A DNA stretch of 49,330 nt, filler included, from Bipalium vagum (Eukaryota): assembly GCA_037834085.1 (NCBI GenBank). It is 2 parts of 2 records of this genome, joined end to end, with 100 filler letters (N's around TTAATTAATTAA, not from the genome) between each part and the next. Parts side by side here need not be neighbours in the genome. Positions count along the whole stretch, not along the records: positions 1 to 31,222 come from JBBMKC010256724.1; 1 more part is not named here. One strand, 5' to 3'. Both the position numbers and the translations under genes were made by a program. Shown here piece by piece: positions 2,806 to 5,760 of the stretch. Position 1 is the first letter of the stretch. Each line of letters starts with the position of its first letter. The notes under the pieces are model-generated. The model searched no databases and had not been told where the DNA came from. It saw nothing but the letters and a program-made list of their open reading frames with translations.

Positions 2806-5760
2806 ATGACTGTATTTTTGACAGGTAAGTCCAAAAATAAGAATTCATTAAATATAATAAATCAATAATAATAATAATAATCCTGAATTATATTTCAGTG
2901 CTGAAAATTGTATTATTTCTCACGACAATCCAAGTGAACGGTATTCCAAGGCTGGAAATATTGATCAGAACTTCATCCCTTCGTGATCAACCTTTGATGG
3001 AAGATGAAGTCGGGTGGGCCATGTGCACCTCTTCTGAGGCAACCCTGGAGAAAGTTCCACTGTTCCCCAACTATACTAATTTCAATTACACCAGTAATCA
3101 TTACAAAATAGAGAACAAGACAAGAGTGATGCGATTCGTGGCCAGAAAGAGCGATCATAAGAAAAAGTTGAATTGCACCATAGGGAAAGGTCAAAAACAA
3201 ATTAATTCGAGTGCCGAGATATTGGTCTACCGTAAGTCAACAGTCTTTGTGAAGACATTGCTCACACCGTTTTAGATAAGCCAACCCAAGTGTCAATATC
3301 TCCAGGAATTGATAAATTGGTTAAGAAATGTTTTTTTTACTCTTGCGAGTCTGGAGACGGTTATCCTACTCCACAATCCACCTGGAATTTGGTAAAGGGA
3401 ATCCCAAATGGAGACAAGTTCTTCAAGATTGTTGGAAGACGACATTTACTTTTCCTTCCTGAATGCCCTGTCCCGTCTCATTGGATCTTTAACTGCAGTG
3501 CCTCCAACACATTCTCCAACGTGACCCACGTGTTTCATCAAACCATATCCTTCAATATTTCCCGTAAGATCTGGTTTTATTTCAGTGACTATAATTTTCG
3601 ACTACTCTTCCATTTTTGATTGCTCAATCTTTACAAACCCCTCAAGTCATTCCATTGTAAAATTGAAATTCGATCCATTTAAAGCCAAAGCAATATCCAA
3701 TCAGATTATCCGATACTTTTGATTGGAAAATTTTTCTCTTTCTTCTGGTCGACCAAAAATTTCTTGTAGTCAATATTCCGTTTTGGACGTTTATCCGAGG
3801 TCAGACATTGATTTTTTTTTGTGTTATGGATGTTTTTTGAATATTTTATCTGCAGTGAATATTCTTTTGTGCCTTTCCACTAAGAGTTCACGCATTGCTT
3901 TACTCTGTCAATATATTCTTCTTCCAGATCAACTTGTAACTGACACGGATCTTTATCGATTAATACCTGCTTTTCATCGTCCTCCACCTTTTTTGGTTGA
4001 CTTGAACTGATATCAGCCATCTTGACACATCTAAAAAGCTTTTGCATAATTTATCACTCTGAACCATTTCACCAAAAGGTTCCACCAGCATTCGATGAAC
4101 TTCGACTGCTGTCTCTTCTTACTGTAAGCAGAAAATGAGCACTTCCTGAAATTAGTTCAAATTGTGAGGTTTTTTTAATTGAGTTAAACAAAAGATGAAA
4201 TTATTACAATTGCAAACCTTTATTAACAAAAGCTGATAAAAATATATTCAACTGAAAATCAATAAATCTGAAGTAATTGTTTGAAAAATAATCGATAATT
4301 AATTGACATAAAACTGACCGAATTAATTCCCTCGCCATTCTGTTGTAATATCAATATTGATTTATTTGTGATCAGTAAGACCTGAACACGTCCGCAGCAC
4401 GGTAAGTCACAGCTCTGAGGAACGGTAATATTTTATTTATATTTGAAATACTTTGTAAACATTCGCTGGTATGACCTGGTCCAAATGACATCCGTCCCCA
4501 GTTGCCAACGTATCCGATGTACATAAAGGTCGCTAAAACAAAATAATATAAATAAATTGGCCATCGCTCACATCCGTTTTCCGCGATGTAGTCAGGGCGA
4601 TCAAATACAAATAATTAAACAACCTTTTCAGGAATACGATGGTCAAATTCCGGATTTCTTTTAACCTTTTTTTAATCATAGATAACGACCTCGTTTGCAA
4701 AGTCTTATATCCTGACTACGACAAAGCATCGGACCTCGGATGTCCTCAACAGTGTTCCTTTGAGTCCCTAAACAGGACAACGTCCCAGGTCGGCGATCCA
4801 AAGATGGACAAAATGACAGCAAAGGATCTGCAACAGCTTTGGGACGGCTTGGCCAGTCTTCGAACGGAATTGTATAAGAACGTCAGTGAGATTCGATTAT
4901 CAATTGAAAAGGCACAGTACAAAGACAAGGTGGAGGGTCTTGCAAAATCTTTCATTGACGACTATTTCAAAACCAGTTTCACAATGAAGAGTCTCCGCGC
5001 CTTCAACGACACCCTGACAAATTTTGTTCATAGAACATTAGAAATGGAAAAGAAAATACGTGAAATCGTTCTTCTCCAACAATCAATGGACAAGAGACAT
5101 CAAAACTTTAAAGCGGAAACGAAAAAGAAGAATTTGAAATTAAACGCAGAATTCGGAAGAATAAAAGACAAAATGAAGGTGGACGATCATCGGATAGCCG
5201 CCTTAGAAAGAGACGTCCGACAGCAAGGACAAAAGGAGTGGAAAGACCACTCTTATGACATCCGAAAGATCTATATGGTCCAGAACGTCTGGCGAGAAGA
5301 TATCGCAAATATGAAGAAAACTATTGCAGATCTCTCAGAGAAGGTTAAAGAGTTTCAAAATGTCAAACTCGTACCCTACTTTTGGCTCTTGACCAAATTT
5401 TCTCTTTTAAGGAGAAACGGAAAAGAGATCACGAGTGAAAAGTTCTATTCCAGTCATAATGGGTACAGGATGTGGCTGGAACTGTGGCCCAATGGGCTAA
5501 AGGGTAATCAAGTTCATGAAGATTTGACGTTCTACTTGATTTTTGATAAGGAGACTTCTAGAAAAAGTCAAGTATCCGTGTCGATAACAATAATTAATCG
5601 ACTTAAATCTACTCTCTCTAAAAAAATATCTCATTATCGTGCCATTGCGGTAAACAAAAGAGTAACGAAGCCTTTTCATTTCAACTACAGACAGCTGCTG
5701 CGTGACAACATTATCGTACACGACAGCATCTACGTAAAGTGCGAGGTCACGATAAAGTGA
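2806..5760 (+). CDS. Predicted secreted protein: signal peptide + 2 Ig domains + coiled coil + C-terminal MATH/TRAF domain (about 572-584 aa)
   Basis: Exons 2806-2824, 2899-3231, 3276-3563, optional microexons 4376-4401 and 4632-4641, then 4682-5760. All junctions are GT-AG and phase-compatible. Signal peptide MTVFLTVLKIVLFLTTIQVNG. Ig1 has C...F.ARKSDHKKKLNC...ILVY. Ig2 has YSC..GDGYPTP..W...FNCSASN. MATH motifs: YFWLLTKFS, SEKFYSSHNGYRMWLELWPNG, HDSIYVKCEV. The domain calls are firm; the Ig-to-MATH join is inferred. Confidence 0.7.
3770..4165 (-). mobile_element. Mariner (Mos1-like) transposase N-terminal remnant inside an intron
   Basis: Minus-strand translation FQEVLIFC...TAVEVHRMLVEPFGE...PKKVEDDEKQVLIDKDPCQ...ELLVERHKRIFTAD resembles the Mos1 HTH region. 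Contains stops and frameshifts. Confidence 0.75.

Follow-up and report, generated by a model that had tools for sequence, protein, structure and literature searches.

Introduction

MATH domains are almost always cytosolic, with the meprins as the usual exception, meprin alpha and beta being the proteins in which an extracellular MATH domain is well established. An Ig ectodomain combined with a coiled coil and a head from an intracellular immune family is also found in the butyrophilins (Ig-Ig-TM-coiled coil-B30.2), which keep the transmembrane (TM) segment and have the head in the cytosol. The VIgLs of gastropods contain an oligomerising connector. These proteins (FREPs, CREPs and GREPs) are secreted and carry one or two Ig domains followed by a C-terminal binding head, which is fibrinogen, C-type lectin or galectin (PMC5433772); different heads occur on one Ig scaffold, as in the planarian group described here. 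A coiled coil followed by a C-terminal MATH domain is the layout of TRAF1-6 and of planarian TRAF-like proteins (PMC6109357, PMC7586133); TRAFs are cytosolic adaptors with a canonical receptor-peptide groove, and TRAF2-6 have an N-terminal RING and zinc fingers. Planarians are good at clearing bacteria, but their known soluble recognition proteins are few.

Here we describe a predicted gene in a 49,330-nt stretch of Bipalium vagum DNA (the window; assembly GCA_037834085.1), which consists of two parts joined by 100 filler letters, positions 1 to 31,222 coming from JBBMKC010256724.1. The predicted product is secreted and has Ig domains before a C-terminal head like the VIgLs, but its head is MATH only (Pfam, fold search), its stalk is much longer and the phyla differ; the initial annotation had called it FREP-like, which describes the layout well and fails as to membership of the FREPs or VIgLs. 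A signal peptide and two Ig domains stand where TRAF2-6 have the RING and zinc fingers, and the protein is predicted to be extracellular with an altered groove (WPF motif lost, strand 6-7 region short). The astacin, MAM, EGF and TM parts of meprins are all absent in Pfam, and meprins are without the coiled coil-MATH unit, the origin being independent; unlike the butyrophilins, the window gene has no TM segment. Judged from sequence, it is not a FREP, CREP or GREP, not a meprin and not a canonical TRAF, and encodes a lineage-specific, predicted secreted protein with Ig domains, stalk and head.

A true homolog is dd_Smed_v6_2336 (SMESG000014710; dd_2336) of Schmidtea mediterranea (Cote et al. 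2019, PMC6453901 Supplementary Data 1), with signal, Ig, Ig, helical stalk, TRAF-like head and no TM; it differs from the window gene in having an extra N-terminal domain of ~130 aa, and its BLAST annotation is hemicentin. The TRAF stalk and head were apparently exported here through exon shuffling and kept in several planarian lineages, which gives part of the planarian TRAF/MATH expansion, so far without explanation, a concrete fate (PMC6109357, PMC7586133), and some genes counted as TRAFs, or labelled hemicentin by BLAST, are neither. Because a member with known gut expression exists in S. mediterranea, function is directly testable there.

Gene structure and domains

The gene is read in four exons, 2806-2824, 2899-3231, 3276-3563 and 4682-5760 (19+333+288+1079 = 1719 nt, or 572 aa plus stop), and its features are as follows.

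2806..2824 (+): exon 1, with the start codon and first 6 signal-peptide residues; phase-1 donor GTAAGT
2899..2942 (+): start of exon 2, remainder of the signal peptide, which is probably cleaved behind V-N-G (residue 21)
2943..3231 (+): exon 2, first Ig domain, C2-like (alignment, AF2, Foldseek)
3232..3275 (+): intron 2, 44 nt, phase 1, position common to the family
3276..3563 (+): exon 3, second Ig domain (motif C..GYP.P..W ... W.F.C; family profile)
3564..4681 (+): intron 3, 1118 nt, with repeat-derived high-depth patches and without a TM exon
4366..4605 (+): conserved island, 90% identical to paralog C213064
4376-4401, 4502-4528 and, third, 4632-4641 (+): candidate micro-exons, hydrophilic (sequence)
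4682..4818 (+): start of exon 4, linker, low confidence; three Cys, including CxxxC (4741-4755), before the helix
4819..5352 (+): exon 4, helical stalk, ~180 residues (AF2); probable coiled coil, TRAF-N equivalent
5377..5748 (+): exon 4, MATH domain, TRAF-type by sequence (Pfam, PDB profile, fold search, alignment, tree)
5758..5760 (+): stop codon TGA (reading of the exon frame)
5847 and 5901 (5847..5906, +): two candidate AATAAA polyadenylation signals (sequence)

The three introns (74, 44 and 1118 nt) are all GT-AG and phase 1, the four exons contain no internal stops, and from 4682, the last acceptor, the reading frame stays open and in phase; the coordinates, splice sites and open frame agree with the four-exon phase-1 frame proposed in the initial annotation. 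Exon 1 and its donor GTAAGT are also present in the close paralog C213064, and the intron at 3232..3275 is missing from a cDNA-like JGI contig (L064). The junction from 3563 to 4682 is predicted from genomic DNA and may include micro-exons. The only public run with the locus is DNA; its contigs overlap across 2720-6100 with no splice joints seen, which argues against a mis-join, and these contigs may be the assembly's own source. By hand estimate, the chance of two such in-phase neighbours is ~1e-6 to 1e-5, given at least 18 Ig-family exons and ~50 MATH matches (both counts being lower bounds) in 441 Mb. The locus very probably holds one fused secreted gene.

The 240-nt island in intron 3 is not a dispersed repeat, with 2 copies in the genome, and its intron-like parts are conserved as much as the candidate exons, so the island does not fix the micro-exons. 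Several micro-exon paths arrive at exon 4 in frame, all of them short and hydrophilic, and the absence of a TM segment is independent of which are used. A path through 4376-4424 and then 4502 ends at a stop, and an Ig-only isoform is possible. A hydrophobic ORF at 3723-4007 was considered as a TM exon and rejected, being weak, Cys-rich and not conserved in the paralog.

Domain searches and folding were run exon by exon, not on the joined protein. The signal peptide was recognised by eye as a hydrophobic stretch ending V-N-G (V-K-G in C213064). Exons 2 and 3 searched alone in Pfam gave no match, so family profiles and folding were needed. Exon 2, which has cysteines at 3024 and 3174 and five sequons for N-glycosylation, was folded together with six family members and gave a confident Ig beta sandwich (AF2 pLDDT 93.5), with best Foldseek matches to CD33, nectin-1 and MAG (prob 1.0); in alignment it is homologous to the second domain of longer family members, whose first domain is missing here. 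The C2-set model is matched weakly by 7 of the 11 members of the exon-3 family, the profile of which finds Ig cell-adhesion proteins (Dscam, contactin, Robo), and profile evidence places exon 3 in the Ig family. As for the signal peptide and two one-exon Ig domains originally proposed, the Ig folds and family links are borne out and the signal peptide stands as read by eye.

The linker that opens exon 4 is 45 residues long with three cysteines. CxxxC also precedes the coiled coil of S. mediterranea dd_1789/P0049, and in fibrinogen chains CxxxC-type motifs form disulfide rings at coiled coils. AF2 monomer prediction places helices at exon-4 aa 46-163 and 168-223, and a heptad test on the stalk, a crude one, was weak (best p 0.02); the stalk is likely a coiled coil. 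MATH_2 (PF22486) matches exon-4 aa 232-355 at 45.2 bits (cut-off 32), and the profile of the MATH clade has TRAF1/2/6 as its best PDB matches (E ~1e-10), with no meprin among its 49 PDB sequence matches. A single-model fold search of the MATH domain ranks SPOP first and TRAF4/6 close behind. The strand 6-7 region, which holds part of the TRAF peptide groove, is ~9 residues shorter than in TRAF1, and this shortening is clade-wide. No TM segment was found in exons 3 and 4 (maximum 19-aa hydropathy 0.8), and the 6 kb that follow contain no hydrophobic phase-1 exon of the kind present in five sibling genes. Earlier claims for this region thus hold as to the long helix (~180 aa), the TRAF-type MATH domain and, by hydropathy and the downstream exon scan, the lack of a TM segment, with the coiled coil itself only likely.

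Relatives in Bipalium vagum and other planarians

The B. vagum assembly (441 Mb, AT-rich) contains at least 48 MATH matches and at least 18 relatives of exon 3; 7 further Ig-family contigs lay outside the comparison, and loci L007 and L010 (overlapping 2506-2661, upstream of the gene) were not carried into the ORF sets and alignments made afterwards. The intron between the two Ig exons has the same phase-1 position across the family. Most readable relatives consist of a signal, an extra domain of ~140 residues, Ig, Ig, a TM exon and a short tail, and those on contigs C266854, C245021, C239232, C196019, C9613 and C231777 (L024, L026, L014, L027, L028 and L030, respectively) are type-I membrane receptors. 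The extra N-terminal domain of the TM receptors has no Pfam match; it is missing in the window gene and its close paralog and present in other members. In five siblings the TM exon sits where the window gene has its coiled-coil exon.

Contig C268906 encodes signal, extra domain, Ig, Ig, coiled coil and MATH (40.2 bits) with no TM, and its coiled-coil exon has a phase-1 acceptor, no Met for more than 100 residues and a 40-nt intron before the MATH domain. Since its last Ig is only 34% identical to that of the window gene, C268906 is a second, old instance of the layout. A putative close paralog is read from two separate contigs, C213064 (exons 1-3, 76%) and C211652 (coiled coil-MATH, 78%, truncated where the contig ends). 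Compared with close paralogs, dN/dS is 0.2-0.8 with very patchy dS, and the C-terminal part of MATH diverges fastest (dN 0.30, dN/dS 0.78); positive selection on MATH was considered and rejected, as this ratio is not above 1. Near-identical and diverged blocks alternate between paralogs (4366-4605 against C213064; exon 4 against C211652), with dS of 0.05 vs 0.3-0.4, and the patchy dS suggests gene conversion.

In a tree built from 31 of this genome's MATH domains, the window gene, its paralog and C268906 lie in a starred clade (97/95) with RING-bearing TRAFs, and this clade includes long branches. The genome also contains a divergent TRAF clade, L003, L004 and L005 (C113780, C168024 and C46054, respectively), two of which have a RING and zinc finger. 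This clade has the same shortened MATH groove region as the secreted forms, and its members are candidate donors of the fusion. Three MATH domains in tandem are encoded by locus L057 (C138699:2095-3402), a single ORF of 551 aa. The TRAF and DDE transposon expansions in this genome fit those reported (PMC6109357).

Searching 1.84 billion proteins with a last-Ig profile returned a dozen family-specific matches of planarian type. P0054 (UniParc UPI000602EE01) is a single 648-aa chain that runs from signal and extra domain through two Ig domains to coiled coil and MATH; both of its ends match C268906 (38% in MATH, 26% N-terminal). JGI contig L064 has no introns at the Ig-Ig or Ig-coiled coil junctions, looks like cDNA, and encodes, after a slip of one base in an A9 run, a same-clade MATH domain (E 2.7e-12). 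By sequence match, P0029 is a truncated model of dd_2336, and the last Ig shows 32% identity to exon 3. The full dd_2336 protein is 600 aa, SignalP positive, with Ig at 151-235 and 243-335 and a TRAF-like domain at 473-599, and is expressed in the intestine (PMC6453901 suppl.); it is listed as 'IG repeat', low-confidence matrisome, and is unnamed and undiscussed (PMC6453901, 2019 table). Another low-confidence matrisome entry is dd_1789, of 521 aa and from cathepsin+ cells (PMC6453901), which as dd_1789/P0049 has signal, extra domain, Ig, Ig, coiled coil and then a ~130-residue tail; this tail was tried as a MATH domain and failed three tests. P0002 is a public gene model that seemingly fuses two tandem family genes and has three copies of the last Ig.

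In the last-Ig tree, the window gene, C268906 and P0054 form one group (94/90, without a star) and dd_2336 and L064 another (85/87); neither this tree nor the MATH tree separates one fusion event from several. Predicted fused proteins in four independent records (C268906, P0054, L064 and dd_2336), two of them transcript-derived, support the fusion. The window gene has the Ig pair with shared phase-1 intron, probable coiled coil, same-clade MATH and lack of TM of this planarian Ig-coiled coil-MATH group, and differs from its dd_2336/P0054-like members in that its Ig pair is not preceded by an extra N-terminal domain.

Word-based homolog searches with exon 4, P0054 and the family alignment, limited by length and word, returned nothing beyond P0054, and no Ig+MATH cluster was present in the atlas, which holds clusters of at least 50 members only. 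No paper describing an Ig-coiled coil-MATH family was found in literature lying outside most subscription journals. The layout recurs across planarians without description as a family in the literature found. In line with the initial annotation, no named family was found; the gene is not a singleton, however, and belongs to a planarian family in which the other members have an extra N-terminal domain, one of them being in the table of PMC6453901.

Origin and function

The best overall explanation, which we consider moderately likely, is a secreted Ig-Ig-coiled coil-MATH glycoprotein of planarian exon-shuffling origin that acts as a multivalent bridge. Exon shuffling, as first proposed, is favored because the introns are all phase 1, the Ig exons are shared with TM siblings and the MATH domain groups with RING-TRAFs. 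The ectodomain exons of a planarian lineage-specific type-I Ig receptor would have been joined in phase 1 to the coiled coil-MATH end of a TRAF, one of the many expanded genes, with this end taking the place of the receptor TM and tail exons; the window gene would afterwards have lost the family's first domain. The product would be a secreted glycoprotein with signal, two Ig domains and a Cys-bearing linker, followed by a long coiled coil that carries the MATH head derived from the TRAF. By analogy with TRAFs the stalk quite probably trimerises, and the linker cysteines possibly lock the trimer, which would give a rod with its three MATH heads and its three Ig arms at opposite ends. As a multivalent bridge, it would bind a peptide or surface ligand by avidity through the remodelled MATH groove, and the Ig arms would engage cells, perhaps via the membrane-bound siblings.

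Expression is available for the S. mediterranea relatives. Gut enrichment of dd_2336 is ~21-fold (FDR 2e-35), and in sorted gut phagocytes it is not enriched (log2FC 0.36, FDR 0.08) (PMC7117911 suppl.). At 40 h after E. coli, log2FC is -1.41 (2.7-fold down) for dd_1789 and -0.50 for dd_2336 (bioRxiv 10.64898/2026.05.17.725704 suppl.), the dd_1789 figure being identical in the heat-killed and live tables. dd_1789 is a strong marker of cathepsin+ cells, which are phagocytes and the main responders to bacteria. A defence role is favored because the relatives are made in gut and cathepsin+ cells and the layout is VIgL-like with differing heads, and disfavored because dd_1789 and dd_2336 fall after E. 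coli and dd_2336 is not phagocyte-enriched. By analogy an immune role for the window protein is plausible, and we tentatively place it in the gut and among phagocytes, in recognition or clearance, a setting ranked above matrix or adhesion roles. It is doubtful, if conceivable, that these proteins form a soluble trimeric recognition family, the planarian counterpart of snail FREPs, in which an exported TRAF head would be re-tuned to microbes or damaged self and paired with membrane receptors on the same scaffold, with interchangeable heads.

The same secreted fusion could instead be structural or adhesive in the gut lining, mucus or ECM, with MATH mainly for oligomer assembly, a role attributed to the TRAF domains of meprins. 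We regard this as unlikely, although the matrisome entries of dd_2336 and dd_1789, the resemblance of the Ig domains to adhesion molecules, an expression that is constitutive and drops after bacterial exposure and the degenerate canonical TRAF groove motifs are all in its favor. Planarian ECM comes mostly from muscle (PMC6453901), whereas the relatives are made in gut and cathepsin+ cells, and the fast divergence of the MATH C-terminal part is as compatible with a surface that binds a ligand as with a scaffold.

Less probable still is a soluble decoy or modulator of the membrane Ig siblings, which would take up the siblings' ligand through its Ig arms in competition with them, the coiled coil-MATH part adding only trimeric avidity. 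The ectodomain is of the same family as the TM forms, TM and secreted versions occur in one genome, and the failure of the dd_1789/P0049 head in MATH tests suggests that the head is interchangeable or has drifted. The window gene, however, is without the N-terminal domain of all TM siblings, the domain likeliest to bind ligand, and the MATH fold is intact in three to four lineages.

It is very unlikely that the locus holds two units, one encoding a short secreted Ig-Ig protein and ending in intron 3, the other an intracellular TRAF without RING that begins at Met 4804. In favor of two units, the link of exon 3 to exon 4 is predicted here from genomic DNA, C213064 diverges after 4605 and no coiled-coil exon appears in the final ~870 nt of that contig, the micro-exon path to a stop makes an Ig-only isoform possible, and planarians commonly have RING-less TRAF-like proteins (PMC7586133). 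Against them, the reading frame continues without a stop and in phase behind the acceptor at 4682, the fused layout occurs in the four independent records, two of them transcript-derived, and the coiled-coil exon of C268906 has no usable start.

Other features in the window

An intronless 834-aa ORF at 20841-23345 (-) encodes a DEAH-box helicase with long insertions; its GC content (47-50%) is above that of its surroundings, and its C-terminal part may continue in another exon. Downstream of the Ig-MATH gene, 7374-7931 (+) contains a fragment of a retrotransposon-type aspartyl protease (gag-asp_proteas E 3e-5), and fragments at 28614-29602 (-) resemble, by eye, a Tigger/pogo DDE transposase. 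A single 287-aa ORF at 25417-26280 (+), with no Pfam match, has a possible signal sequence and several cysteines, and presumably resembles a secreted domain, so far uncharacterised, that molluscs and annelids commonly have.
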